Notes: a model not told the origin generated them from the letters alone. Positions 381-11,860 are shown, counted from the first letter of the stretch. The stretch is DNA of 64,000 nucleotides from Thecamonas trahens ATCC 50062 (GCF_000142905.1 NW_013657643.1:142054-206053); one strand, 5' to 3'. Program-made: numbers and translations.

Positions 381-3300
381 ATGCCCCCCTCCTCCCCCTC
401 CTCCACTCCCTCCTCCCTCTCGTTCTCCTCAGACAGCCGCACCCACTCCCGCTCCAGCTCTCCCTCAAACGACCTGGCTGTCTCGGCCTCGGGCATCCGC
501 CTGTTGGTTATTCGCGACGCAGACGACGACAACGACGACAACGACGACCGCAGTGGCACAGAGCCATCATCGAGTGGCGCGAGTGGTCATGACGAGGCGC
601 CGGCGGACGATTGCAGTAGTCGAGCCATCCCCGCAGGGCTGGCTGACTCGGCACATCTGCTCGTCGACGACGATGGGTCGGATGCAGGCTCGCCCGACTA
701 CTCGTACGCCACAGAGGAGCTGCTGCTGCCGTACCACATCCCGCCGTTGGAGGACTGTCGCCAGCTGGACTCGACGTCCTCAACTTTGGCGTCCGAGCCG
801 GACTCGGAGCCCATCGACACTCGAAAGCTGAGCGATCTCGCGAGACTGGCTCGCGGTAGCGGCGAGAGCAAACCCGCGCTTGACAGCGCTGTCGATCGCC
901 CGCTGCCCGGACCTGACGGCCTTGCCCGCCGCGACGACAACTTTGCCCATCCGTCGTCGTTCGACGGCTTTGGCTCGCGGGTCACCGCCAACTCGACTAC
1001 AACCGCCTCGCAGCGGAGCGGCGCTATCGCCTCGGGCCGCCGCACTGTCTCCTTCCGCGACCGGAACCAAGACAAGCTCGGGACCGGAACCGGAAGCGGG
1101 GCCAACACCAGGAGCGACTTGGTATCTAGCGCTGCCGCCGGCTCTGACGGCAGAGCGCCGGCCCAAGACGAGCAGATCGAGCCGCTGACCTGGACTGGCC
1201 AACTGGAGCGCATCATCGACTCGACCTGGTTTGCGGTTGTCATCGGCTTTATCACCCTCTTTGTCCTTTTTGTCGACGACATCTCAGTCCTCGCCGGTGT
1301 GTCGGATCCCGAGCACGGTGGCCTCGGCTACGCGCTACTAGTCATCAAGGTGGTGACCTTTGTCATCTTCCTCACCGAGCTCGCGGTCTCGTCCGTGGTC
1401 AAGGACGCATACTTTGCATCGTTTTTCTTCTGGCTCGATGTGGTGACCCTCGTCTCGTTTGTTCCGGACCTCGTCCTCCTTTTGTGGGTGTTGACCTCTT
1501 GCTCGCACTCGGAGTCCTCTCAGTGGCCCGCGCCGGCCGTGCCGCGCGAGCTGCGGCCCGGACCCTGTCCTCTTCCGGGTCATGAAAGTGCTCAAGCTCT
1601 CGCACAAGCAGACGGTTAGCGCGTCGATCGACAAGCTCGAAGACCACGCGACTATGTACGACGCTGCCGAGTCGAGTCGACCCGGCGGCATTGTTCTCCG
1701 CGCCATGACTAACAAGGTCACTGCCCTCGTCCTCATTGTCTACATTTCAACTGCCATGTTCCAGACCGACCCTGACTGGTCGCAACACTCGCTCTCGGCT
1801 CTGATGACGCTCGAGGCCGGGTCCGCGGCGGTGGGCTCACCGGCTGCACTCCTGCCAGCCTTCCTTCACCCCTACACTGCGCGCGTCAAGGTAGTCCGCC
1901 TCTTTGTCAACGGCGTGCTGCAGCTTGATGGCCATGTTCCACTGCGGCGCGACTTTCGGACCACCATCTCCACCCCGTCGCAGGCCTCATCGATTCTGCT
2001 CAACATCTCCGAGGACCGCCGCATGGATGCTCTCTTCTCGCTCATGTCACTGGTCGTGGTCATTGTAGGCCTCGGCGTCGGCAATCTGGTCATTTGCCAC
2101 TCGGCCAACAAGCTCGTCGTCATCTCCGAACACCTTATGGCCATCATGCGGCTGCTCACCTCGCACCTCAAGGGCGCGACGTCGACCCGCCGCGGCTCCC
2201 TCGTCGCCTCGGACCTGGCGCCCACCATTCTCTCCGACCTGCCCTCCGTCTCGGTCTTTGGCTACAACGACACCCAGACCACGCTCGCCAAGACCGCGAC
2301 CGATGGGTCGGGCATGTCGCGGCTCCGCCCACCTACCGCAACGTCAGGTCACGGCTCTGGCGGCGGTGGCGCCGAGACTATCATCTCAGCGCTCGCCTTT
2401 TGGGACGAGGCCACTTCGCACCAAGTCGGCTACGTCGAAGGCATCGAGGAGCAGTTGCAGCGGTACCTGGTCGACAATATGCGGGTCGAGCTCGAGGCCA
2501 AACAGGCGCGGCGCCGCGAAGCCGAGCTTCGCAGCCTGGTCCGCCTTGCCGCCTCGCGGCAAGAGCGCGCCCGCGCCCACGTTGAGCGCCTCATCACCAA
2601 GATCGACGCCCTCAAACATCAAGTCTGGCGCTACCGACAGCATCTCTCGCGGACGACGCGCCGGCGTCTGGACGAGGAGGACGCCGAGGACGGCTCCAAC
2701 TCGGCGCTGGCCGAGCTGTCCGACGTCGGCTCGGTGCTCTCGGTGGTGACGCTGCGGTCTGGCGCTCGCATGGCTCGCGACGCCGGCCTCACCCACGCCT
2801 CGGACCCGTCGCTGACCGAGGCGCCGGAGGAGACCCAGTTTGTGTCGGAGCACGACACGGTGTTTGTGGAGCGCCACGACGGCGCCGCCGTTGTCGTCCG
2901 CGGCACCGTCAACGGCCTCATCGAGCAGCTGACCACGCTCTCGGGCACGCCGTCGACCGAGTATCTGCGGACCTTCCTCTACACCTTCCGGCGATACACT
3001 CATCCGCAGCATGTCCTTGAGCGCCTGCTCATCCGGTACTGCATCGCACCGCCGCAGGCGATGCGCCACATGCCACTCAATGCCGGCATGCAGCACTACG
3101 ATCTCGAACTCGGCGACGCGTCGATGAACTGGGCACTCGAAGTCGAGGTCCCCATCCGCAACCGCGTCCAGCAAGTCCTCTACTACTGGGTCACCAACTG
3201 CTTTGTCGATTTTGTCGACTCTCCGCCGCTGCTCGACCTGCTCCGCCGAGCAATCGACAACGTGTTCAACCGGACAACGGCGCCGTTTGCGTCGCGGCTG

Positions 3301-4338
3301 GCGGCAGTCATTGCCAACCAGCTCGACTCGGGCGGGCTCAGCCGCCCGCCTCCGCGCCGCATCCGCTTGTCGATTGCGGCCGTGCCCACACCACGCATTC
3401 CTCTCAGCATCGGCCAGTCGACCGCAGTTGCACCCAGTAGCTCGGAGCCGGCAGACTCGTCGCCGTCGGTCGAGCTCAGCATCACCGACATCGACCCGCT
3501 CGAGCTCGCGCGGCAGCTCAAGCTCCTCGACCACGAGATCTACTGTCAGGTCCAGGTCTGGGAGCTCTTTGACGCGGCTTGGGAGTCTCCAGCACGTGAA
3601 CAGCGCGCGCAAAACGTGCTGGCCCTCGGCAACGTCTTCTCGGCCAGGGTTTTCTGGTTCCGCTCACTCATCCTCAGCGACGGCCTTTCCTCCCGCGAGC
3701 AGGCCCACATCCTCGAGTACCTTATCGAGGTTGGCACGGCCTCGGTTGAGATATACTCGTTTAACGCTGCCGTCGCGGTCCTCGGAGTGCTGAAGGACCA
3801 CGAGGTTGGTGAGTGCTCGTCGGCGTGGCGCAAGATCTCGTCGTCGGCCGCCGCCGACTACGACGCCTTTAAGGCCGTCTTTTCGCGGGCCACCGACTTT
3901 GCGCCGTACCGCGAACGGCTTGTCCACCATCGCACCAACGTACTCGAGCGCGCTGCCGACGACGGCGGCGACCCGACGCTCCCGCCGACCGCTGTCCCCT
4001 ACCTCGGCTTCCACCTCGAGGACCTCTTTGACGCCGACGAGAACAACCCAGACTACACCGACGATTCGCTCGTCAACTTTCAGAAGTGCACACTCATGGC
4101 CTCGCTCATCGACTTTGCGCTGGCTTGGCGCGACACTGCTCCGTGTTTTGTCCCCGTCGACACCATCCAGGACTTTATCCGCGACGGCCAGCTCTCGGCC
4201 GTTACCACGCCATGGGTGCCTTGCACCGCCGGCCCGCTGCTCACCCCATCAGGCGCCGCTGGCTTGGGCGACCCTGCCTTTGATCACGCCGTCCACGACT
4301 CGGACGACGCCATCTCTGCCACCGACAGCGACGAGTAG
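381..4338 (+). CDS. Voltage-sensor-like membrane domain + coiled coil + REM/CDC25 Ras guanine-nucleotide exchange factor (two -1 frameshifts near 1480 and 1567)
   Basis: ORF 153-1619 encodes S1-S3-like helices (WFAVVIGFITLFVLFVDDI; IFLTELAV; FFFWLDVVTLVSFVPDL). The intervening frame encodes VDLLLALGVLSVARAGRAARAAART. ORF 1582-4338 gives LFRVMK, two more TM helices, REM (GTVNGLIEQL, FLYTFRRY, VQQVLYYW) and CDC25 motifs (DPLELARQLKLLD, SFNAAVAV, VPYLGFHLEDL, LVNFQK). The ATG at 381 follows a C-tract; the start is uncertain because of the upstream gap. Confidence 0.85.
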
Positions 4339-4500: not shown

Positions 4501-6059
4501 ATGTCTGCCCTCGGCAACCTGGCCAACCTGGTCAATGACCTAGCCAAGACAGACAGCATGCAAGACATTGCCGAGGTACGTCCCTCCTCCCCCCTCCCCC
4601 CCCCCCCTCCCCCCTCCCCCCCTCCTCTGCCGAATCTCCTTCCCCACCCCGCACACTCTGCGCTGTACCCCTTAGGTCGCCTGTCATGCCAATTCGACCA
4701 GAGCGAGCGACAAGGCAAGTAAGCCGCACGGCGAGACCAACCACGACGACCAGACAGAGGCCACAGAGCCCCCCCCCCCCCCTCCCGCACACCTACACTA
4801 CACAGCCACATAGGGAGCCAGTTGATGCTTCCCTCGCCAGTATCAACTACAGCTGTATCCTGCTCGTTCCAGCCAGTGGGGCGGGGGGGGGGGAGGGGGG
4901 GGGGGTGGAAGTGGCTGAAGGTTGTTCTCTCGCCGACCTGCCATGCGAGGCAGGGCGTACAGGCAGGCGTACAAGCAGGTGCCCAGACAGGCGCACAGCA
5001 AGGTGCACGTGGAGGGGGAGAGTGTGCAAAGAAGGGCAGATACTGTGGCTGTGTGCGGGGTGTGGACTGACATGGTTGGCTGTGGTCGCGGTGTACGCGC
5101 GGGTGTGGGTGTACGTGTGACTGGTCTGGTGTGGGTGCGTGTGGCAGTCGATTGCGGACCTCAACCACCTGACGCTCAAGGACCTGGACCTGATCACCCA
5201 GCTCGGGCGTGGCGCTTATGGTGATGTGTTCAAGGTCAAGGTTTTGGAGACGGGGGAGGAGCTGGCGATGAAGGTGATTTCGATGCTGGAGGCAGACGCG
5301 ACGCACAAGTCGCGGACATTGCTGGAGGTACGGACGCTGCATGCGTCGGCGTGTCCGCATCTGGTCTCGTTCCGTGGCGCGTTTGTGGACGGTGACGACC
5401 TGCACATTCTGCTCGAGCTCATGTGGGGCTCGCTGGAGGACTTGTCTGAGCTTGTCCGCGGCGTCATGGGCGACGACTACCTCGTGCCCGAGTTTGTGGT
5501 CCAGCACGTGGCGCATGCAGTGACAACCGCCATGCGCTACCTCAAGAAGGAGTTCAAGGTCATGCACCGCGACCTCAAGCCGGCCAACATCCTAGTCAAC
5601 TCGGCGGGCATGGCCAAGCTCTGCGACCTCGGCCTCTCCAAGGTCCTCACAGACTCGATCACCAAGACCCAGGTTGGCTCCAAGGCCTACATGTCACCCG
5701 AGCGTCTGACCGAACCCTCGTACGACGTCCGCGCAGACGTCTGGTCGCTCGGACTCGTCCTCGTCGAGCTCGTCACCGGGGAGTACCCGTACGCATACCT
5801 TGACCAGCCGCTGCGCATCCTTACCGCCATTGCCGAGGGCGTCGTGCCGGACATGCCCGACTCGCTCCCGTACTCGGACGAGTGCAAGGACTTTATCAAG
5901 ACCTGCCTCCAGCCCGACCCGGCCAACAGGCCCAAGCCCAAGGCCCTCATCAAGCACTCGTTCCTCAAGTCCAAGTCCTCCGACTCGGCCGCCTTTGCCG
6001 ACTGGATGGCCGACTTGACCCGCCAGTACGAGGAGATCCACGGCGAGTCGTTCAACTGA
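4501..6059 (+). CDS. MAP2K: MAP kinase kinase (STE7/MEK family), 2 exons: 4501-4575 and 5148-6059
   Basis: GRGAYGDV, LAMKVI, HRDLKPANIL, DLG, activation loop DSITKTQVGSKAYMSPERL, YDVRADVWSLG typical of STE7 kinases. A phase-0 intron joins MSALGNLAN..DIAE to SIADLNHL. Confidence 0.93.
4576..5147 (+). other. Spliceosomal intron of MAP2K gene
   Basis: GAG|GTACGT donor, GTGGCAG|TCG acceptor, frame preserved, CTGAC branch-like motif near 5067. Confidence 0.85.
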
Positions 6060-6404: not shown

Positions 6405-8384
6405 ATGGGCGACAGCGCAGACGGACTGGCCGACGCCCCTCCGCCGCCTGCGTCGTTTGTGGAGGCCGGCAGCGTGCTTGCCGTCGGCGCCGTGGGCGAC
6501 GGAGTGCTGCTGGAAGACGCTCCGCCGCCGCCGCCATCCTTCCTTGGCTCGCCGTCGGTGCTGGGAGGCGGTGGTGGGAGCGGGGTCAACTTCCTGGACG
6601 TGGGCGACATCGATGTCGACACCTTTGGCATGCCCATGCCGCCGCCGCCCGAATGCGAGTTCAACGCAGCACCCGACGACGACGACGACCTCTCCGCAGG
6701 CATTCCGCCCGTCTACGACGACCGCATTGCGTCCATCGAGGCTGCCGCAGGCTCAGACGGCCTGCTTAAGGCTGGCTGGGTCTACAAGCGCGGCGGCGGG
6801 AAGCTCCGCTCGCCGTGGCAGAAGCGCTTCCTCGTCCTCACCCTCGACTCGCTCACCTACGCGCCGAGCGAGACCAAGCCCATCAAGGGCCGCATCAACA
6901 TGGCCCACGTCAAGAAGGTCCGCTACTCGAACGACCCAGGTGAGATGGGCAAGCGTTGCGGCATTGTCGTCGTCACCCTCCCGCGCACCTACTACTTTGC
7001 GCCTGAGACGCCCGACGAGTTGATGGAGTGGATGCGCCTGCTGTCTCAAGCCGCAAAGCGCCACCGCTACCTCCGCATCAAGGCTCGCTCCGAGGCCAAC
7101 AACGAGGAGCTGCTTTCGGCTTCGGAGGAAGACGACGAGTCCGAGTTCTCGGCCTCGTCAGACTGGGCCGCCGAAGAGGTTATCAAGGAAGGCAACGTGC
7201 TCAAGCGAGCACCGGTCAAGATCAAGTGGGCCCCGTGCTGGCTCTCGCTCTCCAACAAGAAGATCACCTACGGCTCGGCCAACAACTCGCGGGTTGCCGG
7301 CATGATCTACACCAAGGACATCGAGGGCGTGCTCAAAACCATCGGGCAGCGCGAGGTCGGCGAGCAAGCCAATTGCCTCAGCCTCTACACGGCCGACCGG
7401 ACCTACTTTTTCTCCGCCCCGTCCGAGGTCGAACTCCACAAGTGGCTCGACGTCATTCGCATTGCCCAAGAGCAGGCGCGTGCCGGAGCGTCCGACTCAA
7501 TCGCCGACGCTGGCGCCGCGTCGTCGGCTACCCCCGCCCCGGCCGGCTCTTCGCCACCCAAGAGTGGCTCGGGCGCCTCGCTGGCGGCGGCCGGCTCGTC
7601 TGGCTCGCTGGTCACCGGCGATGAGGACGAGGATGAGGACGACGATGGCGAGATTGTGCTCGAGGGCCTGCTGGTCAAGCGCGGCGGCCGCCGCTCGTCG
7701 TGGCGGACCCGCTGGTTCACCGTCTCGCGCCAGAAGCTCACGTACTCGGCGTCCAAGGAGAAAGGCCTTAAGGGCGAGTTTCTCATCCGCGACATCAAGA
7801 CCGTCCTCCGCGACATCCCACTCAAGGTCAAGCGCGAGCTCGACAAGACCTCGCGTGTCGGCATCACCGTCGCCACCGTCGATCGCACCTACTACCTGGC
7901 CTCCGACGACGAGCGCACCCTCGACGCCTGGTACCGTGTCCTCCATCGGCTCCATCGCGACCGTAAGAAGGGTCGCAAGCGCCCTCTCGACTTTTACCGC
8001 CAGCTCGGTACCAGTGCCGAAGTCGATGTCGACACGCTCAACTCGGCCGATCGCGCCGCTTTGGGCTCAGCCGAGCTTGACGTGTCAACATCGGCCTCGG
8101 CCTCACCGGCCGCCGGCAACGACGAACCGCCGCCGGTTAAGGTCGACACCGCCGCCACTCCCGGTGCTGCTTCGGACGGCGGTGACGCCGACGAAAGCGC
8201 CAGTGATGCAGATGCGCCCGCCGAGAGTGACCGCAATGGAAACGATGACGCACCAGCTGTCCAAGTGGACAAGGGTGACGGCGGGGGAACCGGTGAGGCT
8301 GCCGACGGCGCGGCCGACGACGGCAACGGCAACAACGCTGCTGCCAGTGACGACAGCGAGTCTTCTAGCACCGACCTAGTTTGA
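6405..8384 (+). CDS. Protein with three PH domains
   Basis: Three repeats of the PH pattern: LKAGWVYKRGG..WQKRFLVL..ELMEWMRLL; IKEGNVLKR..ELHKWLDVI; LEGLLVKRGG..WRTRWF..LDAWYRVL, with acidic linkers. Confidence 0.9.
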   Translation: MGDSADGLADAPPPPASFVEAGSVLAVGAVGDGVLLEDAPPPPPSFLGSPSVLGGGGGSGVNFLDVGDIDVDTFGMPMPPPPECEFNAAPDDDDDLSAGIPPVYDDRIASIEAAAGSDGLLKAGWVYKRGGGKLRSPWQKRFLVLTLDSLTYAPSETKPIKGRINMAHVKKVRYSNDPGEMGKRCGIVVVTLPRTYYFAPETPDELMEWMRLLSQAAKRHRYLRIKARSEANNEELLSASEEDDESEFSASSDWAAEEVIKEGNVLKRAPVKIKWAPCWLSLSNKKITYGSANNSRVAGMIYTKDIEGVLKTIGQREVGEQANCLSLYTADRTYFFSAPSEVELHKWLDVIRIAQEQARAGASDSIADAGAASSATPAPAGSSPPKSGSGASLAAAGSSGSLVTGDEDEDEDDDGEIVLEGLLVKRGGRRSSWRTRWFTVSRQKLTYSASKEKGLKGEFLIRDIKTVLRDIPLKVKRELDKTSRVGITVATVDRTYYLASDDERTLDAWYRVLHRLHRDRKKGRKRPLDFYRQLGTSAEVDVDTLNSADRAALGSAELDVSTSASASPAAGNDEPPPVKVDTAATPGAASDGGDADESASDADAPAESDRNGNDDAPAVQVDKGDGGGTGEAADGAADDGNGNNAAASDDSESSSTDLV

Positions 8385-8420: not shown

Positions 8421-9899
8421 TTACCAAACCAATCGCGTCAACCACTCGCACCAGCTCTCGTCAGGGTTGGCGGCGCGCGGCCGGATCGAGGCTCCGGCGG
8501 CCGACGACGGGACAGAGGCGGCAAGGGCCGGATCGTTGAGTTCGGGCCAGAGCCCGCCAACAACGTCGTGAACAGCGAGTTGGCAACCGGCAGTAACAGC
8601 GAGAACAGAGTCGCTCATAGCGAGCGCAACAGGTCCGGCTGGGAGATGTCCCTGTGGAAGAGTCGCGCACCACGCCCCGGTCTCCAGATCCCACACATTG
8701 ACGATACCCGAGTGGTCTCCCGAGACAAACACCTCTTCGCCCGCGGCCAGCGTCCAGACCCAATCGTCGTGCCCGTCGCAGAGCCTAACGACATCGCCGG
8801 TCTCGGCGTCCCACACAATGACTAGGCCATCGTACGATCCGGTGATGAGCCTCCCCGCGCTCGGCACATAGACCATGTCGCGGATGACGTCGCCGTGCTC
8901 GTCCATGACATGCAGAGGGCGGCCGAGGGCGCGAATGTCGTAGGTAGCGGCGACGCCGGCGCGCGATGCAACATGGACCTTGGTTGGCTTGCGGTCAAAG
9001 ATAACCTTGGTCACCTCGGGCTGCCAGACCTTGACCGAGTGAGCTGCAGCCTCGGCCCGGGCATCATACCAGGTCACCTGCCCGCGATACGAGCCCACAG
9101 CAACCACCGGTGCGCTCCCAACCACCGCCACATCCGTCGACTGGACTGCCCCGTTGCTACCACCCGCCGAGCCGGCGTCCGATACCAGAGCGCCGACCTC
9201 AATGTCGAGCAGCGCGATGGAGCCGTCGTGCAGGCCGGCGACAGCGTGCGGGAAAACGCCCGGATAGCGTGTCGGCGCTGGCGAGGCGGCATGCGGCAGC
9301 CACGACGAGAGCGTGAGGACCGAGGCCGCTAGCGGAATCGCAGCCGAGCACGGGTCTTGCGCGCCCGCCTCTGCCGCCGCCAGGTCCCAGATCCGAACCG
9401 AGGCATCGGTGGAGCCCGAGACGGCGACACCTGCGGCATCCAGCCACAGAGCGGCGTTGATCTTCTTGGCGTGGCCCTCGAGGACAAAGTCAAGAGCCAT
9501 CTCTCCACCGGCCGAGCACTCGCGCGGCCATGAGAAGCGACGCAGCCGCGAGTCGCGGGCACCGGTCAGGACGGCGTCGCCAGCCACGTCGAGCGTCCAC
9601 ACTGCGCGGAGATGGGCCAGGTCCGGGCTCCGCCAGCTCGCGCCACGCAAGCCGCGCCAGCGATCAGGCCGCCATCGTGTCACCGCCACATACGCTGCCA
9701 TTGGCCCAGCAGCAGCAAGGCCAGGTGGGAGAGCCCGCAACGGAAGGGCGTGGTCACGGGCGAGGGCAGCAGCCCAGACGGCACGGTCGGCGCCGACACG
9801 GGCGAGGCGGCGGGAGGCAGCACGGGCGGCGGCGACGTCGGGTGCAGGGGTGTGGGAGAGGATGGAGACAAGGAGTTCGTCGGGGAGGTCTTCGAGCAT
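8421..9899 (-). CDS. F-box/WD40 repeat protein
   Basis: N-terminal F-box LEDLPDELLVSILSH; WD40 repeats GHAKKINA..SGSTDASVRIWD, EHGDVIRD..TGSYDGLVIVWD, GHDDWVWTL..SGDHSGIVNVWD. Confidence 0.9.
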   Translation of the reverse strand: MLEDLPDELLVSILSHTPAPDVAAARAASRRLARVGADRAVWAAALARDHALPLRALPPGLAAAGPMAAYVAVTRWRPDRWRGLRGASWRSPDLAHLRAVWTLDVAGDAVLTGARDSRLRRFSWPRECSAGGEMALDFVLEGHAKKINAALWLDAAGVAVSGSTDASVRIWDLAAAEAGAQDPCSAAIPLAASVLTLSSWLPHAASPAPTRYPGVFPHAVAGLHDGSIALLDIEVGALVSDAGSAGGSNGAVQSTDVAVVGSAPVVAVGSYRGQVTWYDARAEAAAHSVKVWQPEVTKVIFDRKPTKVHVASRAGVAATYDIRALGRPLHVMDEHGDVIRDMVYVPSAGRLITGSYDGLVIVWDAETGDVVRLCDGHDDWVWTLAAGEEVFVSGDHSGIVNVWDLETGAWCATLPQGHLPAGPVALAMSDSVLAVTAGCQLAVHDVVGGLWPELNDPALAASVPSSAAGASIRPRAANPDESWCEWLTRLVW

Positions 9900-9924
9900 G
9901 GAAGGAGGGGTGGGGAGGTGGCGT

Positions 9925-9925
<1 letters not shown>

Positions 9926-9961
<36 letters not shown>
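9926..9961. repeat. (GT)n microsatellite
   Basis: About 18 GT units just upstream of the F-box gene start. Confidence 0.95.
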
Positions 9962-9966
<5 letters not shown>

Positions 9967-10084
9967 GCCAGCGGTTGTGCGACAGGCGCACAGGCCACGA
10001 CTCGCAGGCATCTCGGAAGGCGGGTGGACTTTTGGTGCGGCAGCCGGCCGGGGCATCGCGGGGTATGATTGTGGGCTTGGTCGA

Positions 10085-11860
10085 TCATGATTGGATATCG
10101 GCAGACACGCCGGCGCCATCAAGGCGGTCGAGTTCGGTGGCGAGAAGGGCGAGCGAGGACTCGATCTCGGCGGCGCGGGTGCTGGGATGGGCGCTATTCG
10201 GCCCGGCTCCACCGTCCGTGCCGGGTCGGGCGCGGTCATAGATGCGTGCGACGTGTGGGGCAATGACAGCGTCGACAAAGCCGGAGTTGAACTGAGGGAG
10301 GGTGAGGAGAACGTCGAGCGGGAACGGAATCAGGTTGGAGCGGAAGCCGATGGCGGCGCACTCGGGGTCGTGGCACTTTTGGTAGTAGCCGCCGTGGGCA
10401 AGGTCGGCAATGAGCATGACATTGTTCGACGCGTGGTGCCGCTTGACGTTGTGGCAGTACTTCCACGAGCCAGCGATCTCGCACACAATTCGCTGTGACC
10501 GCGCAATGTAGAACCAGGTCCGGATGCGCCCGCCAGGAGATATCACGTCCTCCAGGTGGCGGAAGACGGCCGGGAAGAGCGCCGCCGCCGGCGTGTGCTC
10601 CCCACAGACTCTGCTGCCTCCAGCTTCGATACGCTCAGCTTCGACCGGCGCCAGGGACAGTCGAGGCCGCGCAACCGACTGGCGGTTGCCGCAGCGAAGG
10701 ATAGTCATCGAGTCGGCACCATCGATTGACGCCGAGACAAGCGAGTCACGAAATAGGCGCGCCTCCGACGTGATTGGAAACCGGGAGGTGCGGGCGACAA
10801 CGAGCGGGGCGCGGCGACCGGCTTTGGACGACTTGTACAGTCGAAAGTTGCGATTCTTGGTGTAGACGCCGAGGTCGACAAGACACCCGGGCGAGCCGTC
10901 TTTGGCCGCCACGTCGACGCATGACGACCGCCCTGCGCGCGTCGCCCGAGCCCGCAGCCGGGCCACAAACGTCGTCATGAACTTACCGACCGAGTACACG
11001 TCCTGAAACGCGCGGCCAGGAACATGGACTATGACGTGCTGCGAGAACTTGGCCGGTGTCGACGAGTCGAGGACCAGTGCGTGGGCGATCGAGAGCGGCG
11101 TTGGAAGCCGGAACACCTTGGAAAGCTCGCGCATCAGCGCTCGAAGCAGGCGTGCCACCCGTGCCTCGCCATCGACTTCAGGGTTGGCGGCAGTCGCAAA
11201 CTCGAGGTCGATGTACAGCCGGCAGACAGCATGTGGCGGAATGACTTCGTAGAACACACGCTCGTCGAGCGGTAGCTCTGCATACTCGCGCCAGAAGGCG
11301 TCGAGGTGAGCGGTGGCAAACCATCGCGCCCCATTGCCGGCGCCCTTGATCTCGGCAGCCACAACCATGGCCCCCGGCTTGCCCAGCGCGTCGTCCAGCG
11401 CTTGCGCCTGCTTGCGGAAGATGGTGAGACAAGCCATGCCTTCAGCCGTCGCCGTCGCCAGCCGGCCTCGCGCTTGCTCGCCCCCCGCACACAACTCTAG
11501 CGCCGCACCTCGGCCTGCCTCGGCCGCAAAGCTCCGCGATCGCCGCTGCGCCATCGCCAGCAGCCTGCGGACCTCGATCTCCATAGCACACCGAGTCCGC
11601 CCGTCATAACCCCCCTCTCCGACCCCATAGAAGGCCTCAGCCGATACCCCCAGCGCACGCGCGCGCTTGAGCGGCGGCAACTCCGGACCACCGTCATTAC
11701 CCGCCTTCCGCCTCCGTTTCCCGACTTGCGCATCGGCCCGTCGACCTGCCTGCCGCGCATCGACCCGTCCGCCCAGCTGCCGCCGCCCACCATCCACCAG
11801 CCCACCGACCACCAGAGGCGGCACGCCCCGTCGCCCCGCCGCCGTCCTCCGGAGCACCAT
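10085..11860 (-). CDS. PRIMPOL: DNA-directed primase/polymerase PrimPol
   Basis: FYEVI..CRLYIDLEF (DxE), KFSQH (SxH), VDLGVYTKNRNFRLYKSSK, C-terminal zinc finger CHNVKRHHASNN..YQKCHDPEC. Start codon uncertain. Confidence 0.95.
   Translation of the reverse strand: MVLRRTAAGRRGVPPLVVGGLVDGGRRQLGGRVDARQAGRRADAQVGKRRRKAGNDGGPELPPLKRARALGVSAEAFYGVGEGGYDGRTRCAMEIEVRRLLAMAQRRSRSFAAEAGRGAALELCAGGEQARGRLATATAEGMACLTIFRKQAQALDDALGKPGAMVVAAEIKGAGNGARWFATAHLDAFWREYAELPLDERVFYEVIPPHAVCRLYIDLEFATAANPEVDGEARVARLLRALMRELSKVFRLPTPLSIAHALVLDSSTPAKFSQHVIVHVPGRAFQDVYSVGKFMTTFVARLRARATRAGRSSCVDVAAKDGSPGCLVDLGVYTKNRNFRLYKSSKAGRRAPLVVARTSRFPITSEARLFRDSLVSASIDGADSMTILRCGNRQSVARPRLSLAPVEAERIEAGGSRVCGEHTPAAALFPAVFRHLEDVISPGGRIRTWFYIARSQRIVCEIAGSWKYCHNVKRHHASNNVMLIADLAHGGYYQKCHDPECAAIGFRSNLIPFPLDVLLTLPQFNSGFVDAVIAPHVARIYDRARPGTDGGAGPNSAHPSTRAAEIESSLALLATELDRLDGAGVSADIQS

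Follow-up and report, generated by a model that had tools for sequence, protein, structure and literature searches.

The subject of this analysis is a gene at positions 381-4338 (+ strand) of a 64,000-nucleotide stretch of DNA from Thecamonas trahens ATCC 50062, called the window below; in the 28.7-Mb assembly of this organism it corresponds to C37:142054-206053. Its product is probably a dimeric, voltage-sensor-coupled guanine nucleotide exchange factor (GEF) of the Ras family, a reading to which we give a probability of about 0.6. The architecture, with an S1-S4 domain, two further transmembrane (TM) helices around an external domain, a coiled coil and a REM-CDC25 unit, is about as certain as computation allows, as judged from profiles and predicted models. 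In the proposed mechanism, a change in membrane potential would move the arginine-rich S4 helix through a charge-transfer centre made of F-x-x-E and an Asp, and the S4-S5 linker would hand this movement to a dimer core of S5 and S6. From there, the extended S6 helices and the coiled coil would relay it to REM-CDC25, whose exchange activity, or whose access to membrane-bound Ras, Rap or Ral, would be altered. What we infer is the voltage control of exchange, which includes the movement of S4 with voltage, its effect on the GEF, the sign of the response and the identity of the target GTPase. Among the known enzyme-coupled voltage sensors, the effector is of a new class.

One gene behind three reading frames

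In the deposited assembly, the coding sequence is spread over three frames. A three-frame translation of positions 1141-1802 placed S1 (..LFVLFVDD..), S2 (..FVIFLTEL..) and S3 (..SFFFWLDV..SFVPD..) in frame 3 of the window, which runs from 381 to 1483; the third of these helices ends in ..FFFWLD..SFVPDLVLL. Frame 2 follows at 1484-1564 and reads VGVDLLLALGVLSVARAGRAARAAART. Frame 1 takes over from 1564 with PVLFRVMKVLKLSHK and stays open through 4335. The first-pass annotation had proposed that two apparently separate open reading frames (ORFs) are linked by this third frame, and the frames do read as it claimed. We compared contigs from four public sequencing runs over 381-4338. An extra T behind 1479 and an extra C behind 1562 were present in the contigs of both run X1 (same organism, 2010; contig over 1339-1623) and run X2 (estuary metagenome, 2025; 2541-nt contig over 1235-3773), so that across 1470-1590, where the annotation had suggested resequencing, the DNA contigs gave a single frame. 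Judged from its 6 substitutions in 2541 nt, the X2 contig comes from another strain. No further indel and no joint was found across 381-4338 in any contig. Both frame changes are homopolymer undercalls of the assembly and no feature of the gene. Because the two single-base insertions are present in two independent runs, 381-4338 is one continuous, intronless T. trahens gene of about 1,320 codons.

An orthologue led to the same structure. This protein (P0002; 1092 aa) is encoded without introns on a metagenome contig (L001, ENA ERZ17175005) and is 50% identical to the window protein over the whole length, junction included. Its S3-S4 stretch lies in a single frame, ..LLFTGVDLLLSLGVLAVARAGRAARAAARTPVLFRVMKVLKF.., and corresponds residue for residue to the three window frames set end to end; likewise, a Pro stands between ..AART and VLFRV.. 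at its junction. The frame-2 motifs are moreover the consensus of a family with over 900 members. Since the orthologue, the two read sets and the family motifs agree, frame 2 is not a chance product of reading GC-rich DNA off frame (the G+C content of the window DNA is about 63%). Complete transcriptome-derived ORFs of the same architecture were found in Lithocolla (P0007) and Ceratiomyxa (P0014), and six T. trahens paralogues are continuous or nearly so. The idea that the frame changes are real, leaving a pseudogene or a TM protein beside an independent GEF, has in its favour the three frames of the deposited assembly and an ORF list with two ORFs; it is highly improbable, being refuted at the DNA level by the two read sets and contradicted by the continuity of the orthologue, of the six paralogues and of the alignment through the junction.

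An NCBI gene model named 'Ras guanine nucleotide exchange factor A' (P0001; 1211 aa) contains the ORF at 1582-4338 with 100% identity. This model reads ..DLVLLF/GPRRPCRASCGPDPVLFRV.. across a false 40-nt intron and has lost the S4 arginines; it crosses the run of N at 223-322 by another intron. The sensor is hidden in the public gene model because the homopolymer errors were bridged with false introns. An intron at 1484-1523, leading from frame 3 to frame 1, was rejected: it would delete conserved S4 residues, the orthologue has no gap there and no contig has a joint. A programmed frameshift or RNA editing is superfluous, since the extra bases are already in the DNA contigs. The start codon is uncertain because of the run of N, 381 being the first in-frame ATG past the gap. 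One further run, X8 (labelled as this organism, 2020, of unrecorded kind), gave contigs only over 3673-4338 and past the stop, a pattern that would fit 3'-biased cDNA and proves nothing.

Domain layout and the S1-S4 domain

The uninterrupted orthologue served as a stand-in for the whole protein in the folding, profile and complex predictions, and the three frame pieces of the window were searched separately. The features are as follows, in window coordinates.

223-322, no strand: assembly gap, a run of 100 N inside the open frame, in the 5' region
381-1226, +: cytosolic N-terminal region of low complexity, frame 3
1227-1295, +: S1 helix, ending in ..LFVDD, with the second Asp present in 86/94 family members
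1323-1400, +: S2 helix (..FVIFLTEL..), whose F-x-x-E supplies the aromatic and the acidic residue of the charge-transfer centre
1413-1481, +: S3 helix, SFFFWLD..SFVPD, with the Asp present in 94/94
1480-1483, +: T run, T4 in the assembly and T5 in reads; apparent shift from frame 3 to frame 2
1484-1523, +: false 40-nt GT..AG intron of the NCBI model P0001, really coding for the loop between S3 and S4 and for the first part of S4
1508-1608, +: S4 helix, first half (1508-1564) in frame 2 and second half (1564-1608) in frame 1
1563-1565, +: C run, C3 in the assembly and C4 in reads; apparent shift from frame 2 to frame 1
1609-1707, +: S4-S5 linker, with the motif S.(V/I)G..L just before S5, kept in all effector classes
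1708-1764, +: S5 helix (TNKVTALVL..)
1765-2022, +: ectodomain of about 85 residues, on the extracellular side between S5 and S6; modelled as two helices plus a four-stranded sheet, and containing an NIS sequon
2023-2169, +: S6 helix, one long helix into the cytosol (..VGNLVICHSANKLVVISEHLMAIM..), with the family motif G..(I/F)..DA..LV conserved
2389-2646, +: conserved linker, predicted coiled coil; near-identical to the orthologue over ..QLQRYLVDNMRVELEAKQARRRE.., with a weak coiled-coil-type match
2893-3243, +: REM domain (Pfam RasGEF_N, PF00618), 68.2 bits against a cut-off of 28.3, E 8.1e-19
3502-4089, +: CDC25-type catalytic domain (Pfam RasGEF, PF00617), 111.6 bits against a cut-off of 23.1, E 5.4e-32
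4336-4338, +: stop codon

The catalytic end was the easier one to name. REM and CDC25 are homologous to SOS1 and SOS2 (E ~3e-20), and the conserved GEF blocks ..ELARQLKLLD.., ..SFNA.., ..VPYLG.. and ..VNFQK.. are present, which by sequence makes this an SOS-like Ras-family exchange unit. As there are six TM helices, both protein ends are cytosolic, where a GEF must be. The Pfam scan of the window protein and the orthologue gave only a weak Ion_trans match, RasGEF_N and RasGEF, with no Guanylate_cyc and no PTEN-like phosphatase. The order that had been proposed for the part behind S4, two more TM helices around an external domain followed by a coiled coil, REM and CDC25, was recovered by the model and by Pfam. 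In the N-terminal region, a basic motif, RRTVSFRD (1038-1061), lies about 55 residues before S1; it is RKTVSFRD in the orthologue and looks like a basophilic-kinase site. A second motif, RRGS after S6, was seen in the window protein only, compared with the orthologue.

To place the TM module, residues 61-430 of the orthologue were used in an exhaustive representative search, which returned 918 proteins at E <= 1e-3, 96 of them at E <= 1e-10; a simpler homology search with the TM region had returned 5 matches only. The family consensus reads ..ALFxDD.., ..FxxFxxEL.., ..SFFFWLDLxA..SLxPD.. and ..ARAGRAARAGxRAxRxxRxxRL... A profile of 42 modules was then compared with all PDB sequences, and all 29 matches (29/29) were voltage sensors, among them Nav1.7 repeats III and IV (E 5.6e-6), Nav1.5, Nav1.4, Hv1 (2.1e-4) and Cav1.1. 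In these alignments the S2 FxxE, the S3 D and the S4 arginines were in register, and the profile found no PDB match past S4. The AlphaFold2 model of the orthologue's module (pLDDT 82.9, pTM 0.76) was compared with 48,161 chains by VIA-align. The top structural match was the sensor of Ci-VSP (4g7v), with Z 12.7 and a root-mean-square deviation of 2.9 Å over 130/136 residues, followed by Nav1.7 (Z 11.9), NavEh (Z 11.4) and the sensors of Nav1.5, CatSper, Kv4, Kv1.3, Cav and TPC; nearly all of the best 47 rows were S1-S4 domains.

Conservation pointed the same way. When 94 modules were aligned to the profile, the S2 acid was Glu in 87/94 and Asp in 7/94, beside the S1 and S3 Asp residues counted above, and nine S4 columns were 70-99% Arg or Lys. 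The three acidic counter-charges that the first-pass annotation had noticed (FVDD, FLTE, FWLD) are thus found in frame 3 and conserved across the family. In the window protein, the first half of S4 has R at four positions (ARAGRAARAAAR), spaced 3, 3 and 4 residues, and the second half has R, K and K at every third residue (LFRVMKVLK), so that seven S4 charges are kept, as in the orthologue. By sequence profile and predicted fold, S1-S4 is a voltage-sensor domain, whose S4 would move with voltage.

The predicted dimer and the rival readings

Behind S4, the likeness to ion channels ends. Neither a re-entrant pore loop nor a selectivity-filter motif lies between S5 and S6. The S5-ectodomain-S6 unit folded alone with pLDDT 87.3, and its structural matches were generic long helical hairpins (Z <= 9.1), with no pore domain among them; a fold assignment for this unit therefore failed. 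No conserved GXG was present after S6 in the comparison of the window protein with the orthologue. On the model, S5-S6 is not a pore domain, and in that sense these two helices of the six-TM (6TM) part are not channel-like. The absence of pore features agrees with the alveolate cyclase fusions, whose architecture is described as 'radically different' from that of K+ channels, with GXG only after TMD6 (PMC3283738).

Instead, S5/S6 is predicted to be a dimer interface. The homodimer prediction of the module reached a score of 0.46 in 3/3 runs, against 0.00 for the best control, with at least 82% contact agreement and a partner pLDDT of at least 61; the pass mark is reached by 21/30 solved homodimers and by 0/23 solved monomers. 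The predicted interface is symmetric and consists of S5, the ectodomain helices and S6, at residues 182-246 and 286-336 of the module, and S1-S4 is not involved. Class III cyclases must dimerise for activity. The predicted dimer fits the cyclase-coupled relatives for this reason, as they have one class III domain per chain.

Several results weigh against the main reading. Searched with the whole module, Foldseek found nothing in the PDB at E <= 0.001; Kv1.2-2.1 came closest with E 0.019, and the best rows belonged to 6TM channels, with TM-scores near 0.27. The structural comparison with sensors that had been proposed was hence positive with VIA-align and the profile, but not with Foldseek. The Pfam Ion_trans match stays below the 25-bit cut-off in the window piece (12.2 bits, E 0.1) and in the orthologue (19 bits), while relatives such as P0089 (43 bits) and P0013 (26.6 bits) are above it. 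Some S1-S4 folds, for instance those of TRP channels, do not sense voltage. At the fifth S4 charge position (1564-1572), the window protein and the orthologue have Thr-Pro-Val, where Arg or Lys stands in the other 93/94. The continuation of frame 2 into (V)LFRVMKVLK and the spacing of its basic residues were as first described, but a Pro precedes the V, and the fifth charge position is itself this Val. The sensor may thus be altered, and Thr-Pro-Val could shift its voltage range or open a gating-pore path. Two Ras-GEF paralogues of T. trahens, on contigs C11 (L017:2720-3850) and C65 (L018:2604-3683), have a degenerate S3 and S4 with few or no arginines and may have lost voltage sensing. The dimer score may reflect the predictor's memory of channel-like assemblies. 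Finally, a search for RNA runs of T. trahens came back empty, and among the sequencing runs on record as RNA, none contained the 381-4338 stretch.

The main rival is that S1-S4 is a scaffold within a receptor-like dimer. The protein would then be a receptor-type or membrane-anchored dimeric GEF, in which the 6TM part anchors and dimerises, the S1-S4 domain is inherited and does not respond to voltage, and the membrane part perhaps senses an external ligand through the S5-S6 ectodomain, or lipid or pH. We consider this unlikely, yet a good deal of the data could be read so: the ectodomain is a folded, conserved alpha/beta unit with no assigned fold, the window protein has a Pro in place of its fifth S4 charge, S4 is degenerate in some paralogues, and the predicted interface leaves S1-S4 out. 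What speaks for a voltage sensor is that seven S4 charges remain and that the charge-transfer centre (FxxE, D) is intact and hardly varies within the family. A mere anchor would not readily account for this, which weakens that version of the reading.

It is less likely still that the protein is a channel-enzyme, whose 6TM part conducts ions by way of an oligomeric pore, which has been claimed for the Paramecium cyclase, or within the sensor itself, as Hv1 does, with a GEF that is regulated by the flux or simply co-localised. For the purified Paramecium cyclase, the passages of PMC12414865 and PMC3283738 that cite Schultz 1992 credit it with a K+ conductance. Sensors missing an S4 charge can carry gating-pore currents (PMC10651576), the window protein is without its fifth charge, and Hv1 is among the profile matches. 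We nevertheless think conduction improbable, since neither a P-loop or filter motif between S5 and S6 nor a conserved GXG after S6 was found, the profile had no PDB match past S4, the S5-ectodomain-S6 model resembled helical hairpins only, and the predicted assembly is a two-fold dimer with S5 and S6 packed on each other. For the cyclase family, channel function is itself described as not established (PMC3283738).

The family, known systems and wider meaning

The voltage-sensor-coupled GEF of the window is not a one-off. In the T. trahens genome the module was found at 10 or more loci (at least 10), and in seven of them it is followed by REM/RasGEF: the window gene and loci on contigs C61, C18, C32, C7 (with EF hands), C11 and C65. 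Of the other modules, one comes with an SH3 domain and two are without a Pfam effector in the open frame. As seven paralogues keep the architecture, it appears to be under selection. Two of them may repeat the annotation problem of the window gene: a frame change lies in a T run inside S5 of the C32 paralogue (L013 ~3385-3395), where the NCBI model P0004 is without most of S5, and another lies just before S5 of the C7 paralogue (L016 ~2918-2939). These gene models are putatively distorted by assembly indels, in the way established for P0001. Modules of the cyclase-type branch are also present in T. trahens, at L015:2450-4966 (G000:C18) and L014:5078-8032 (G000:C53); the former (C18b) is identical to the module of P0027, a protein that matches cyclases weakly, and the latter groups with a Ploeotia cyclase.

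Ras-GEF versions were found elsewhere in the transcriptomes of Lithocolla globosa and Ceratiomyxa fruticulosa and in metagenomes. The combination of sensor and RasGEF that had been suggested for a search in protists is thus present in Lithocolla, in Ceratiomyxa and in the seven T. trahens genes. A version with RhoGEF-PH is kept in dictyostelids (D. purpureum, D. firmibasis, D. citrinum, D. cf. discoideum, Polysphondylium, Tieghemostelium and Acytostelium), in proteins that are all annotated as hypothetical. Among the best 79 of the 918 matches, Pfam gave Ion_trans in 45, Guanylate_cyc in 14, RasGEF in 5, RGS in 4, RhoGEF in 2 and PDEase_I in 1. With a local cyclase profile, a cyclase domain was detected in 48/153 collected proteins, nearly all of which came from the exhaustive module search; named cyclase-coupled relatives are those of Crypthecodinium, Ploeotia and Rhodelphis. 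The first-pass annotation had pointed to ciliate and apicomplexan cyclases with such a module; here the 6TM module with FFFWLD and ARAGRA was found before class III cyclase domains of many protists. Members coupled to RGS (P0044, P0062, P0075, P0082, P0089, P0118) and to phosphodiesterase (PDE; P0093, P0094, P0154) were confirmed singly. The PDE domains are class I cyclic-nucleotide phosphodiesterases, and one of these RGS- or PDE-coupled proteins is from the green alga Cymbomonas tetramitiformis. We found no publication on RGS- or PDE-coupled sensor cassettes.

The profile of the whole 6TM part, beyond S1-S4, was common to 118/186 matched proteins. In sequence terms, the 6TM cassette is a module shared among cyclase-, RGS-, PDE-, RhoGEF- and Ras-GEF-coupled proteins, and the phrase that a cyclase has been replaced by a Ras-GEF is a fair description. 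We also built a quick maximum-likelihood tree of 94 modules with a short search; it is unrooted, has several long branches and shows clustering, not the order of events. In this tree, the Ras-GEF-coupled modules, together with two SH3 proteins and two fragments, formed a group of 15 rows (SH-aLRT 99), which Ceratiomyxa and the dictyostelid RhoGEFs joined to make 19 rows (SH-aLRT 92). The cyclase-, RGS- and PDE-coupled modules were on the other side of the tree.

Weber et al. reportedly described in 2004 the voltage-sensor/adenylyl cyclase fusions of Paramecium, Tetrahymena and Plasmodium (ACalpha). The closest known systems are such protist sensor-cyclases, and with the cyclase-coupled relatives of the Crypthecodinium, Ploeotia and Rhodelphis type the window protein shares LFxDD, FxxEL, SFFFWLD, ARAGRAARA...R..R..R, TxKV and G..F..DA..LV in an N-terminal 6TM part. 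Shared too are the absence of a P-loop between S5 and S6 and an enzyme placed C-terminally in the cytosol (PMC3283738). It differs in that the effector is REM-CDC25 with a coiled coil and not a class III cyclase, and in having no GXG after S6. Another fusion of a voltage sensor and an adenylyl cyclase is PPTG_13136 of Phytophthora, and according to a 2025 paper the sensor-cyclases are a new family that occurs in stramenopiles and alveolates only (PMC12223298); the GEF-coupled group, in contrast, comes from Amorphea (apusomonads, nucleariids and Amoebozoa).

Ci-VSP, the best structural match of the model, likewise joins an S1-S4 sensor to a cytosolic catalytic domain. A VSP has four TM helices and a short linker from S4 to a PTEN-like phosphatase, whereas the window protein has a further pair of TM helices, an ectodomain, a predicted dimer interface and a coiled coil between S4 and the GEF. 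The REM and CDC25 catalytic unit is that of SOS1/SOS2 and RasGRF; unlike the window protein, which is an integral membrane protein, SOS is soluble, and adaptors and lipids recruit it to the membrane via its DH-PH and histone-fold domains. Hv1, a profile match, and the sperm Na+/H+ exchanger SLC9C1, among the fold matches of the model, are dimeric non-channel or pore-less proteins with an S4-type sensor, and Hv1 has a C-terminal coiled coil as well. Hv1 conducts protons and SLC9C1 exchanges ions; in neither is the output a signalling enzyme acting on a small GTPase. Part of the cassette is already catalogued in Pfam 38.1 as PF26726, 'Helical_RasGEFs', but not as a voltage sensor: the family appears in precomputed annotations of cyclase-, PDE- and RhoGEF-coupled relatives and of two Atlas clusters, its name makes no reference to a voltage sensor, and it is not listed for P0001 or P0002. 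A 2023 review lists as voltage-sensor proteins the channels, VSP, SLC9C1, Hv1 and the protozoan cyclases (PMC10651576). Our literature search found no publication in which a Ras or Rho GEF is joined to a voltage sensor. The earlier statement that no characterised example is known agrees with this, though the protein has company in at least seven T. trahens paralogues and a wider family.

On the 3' side of the gene lie a protein kinase domain gene at 5139-6056 (+; Pkinase E 9.8e-57), a gene for a protein with three PH domains at 6405-8381 (+, the same strand as the GEF gene) and an F-box/WD40 protein gene on the opposite strand at 8424-10088 (-).

A broader proposal, which we hold tentatively and at slightly less than even confidence, concerns a conserved Amorphean family whose members are Ras-GEFs in apusomonads, nucleariids and Ceratiomyxa and carry RhoGEF-PH in every dictyostelid sampled: these proteins would convert membrane potential into activation of small GTPases directly, without a second messenger. 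Voltage sensors coupled to enzymes are rare, and one attached to a Ras or Rho GEF would add a new class of output. If true, membrane potential would stand directly upstream of GTPases for cell polarity, motility and growth, and the family would be a candidate for the long-sought link of electric fields or membrane voltage to the Ras/Rho polarity network, as in electrotaxis. Because the RhoGEF branch includes a Dictyostelium cf. discoideum protein, a genetic test would be possible in the model amoeba used for electrotaxis. Since the cassette also stands before RGS and PDE domains, signalling enzymes may be under voltage control far more widely in protists than has been described. The GEFs would then belong to a broader toolkit, with cyclases, PDEs, RGS proteins and GEFs all driven by one dimeric 6TM sensor cassette.

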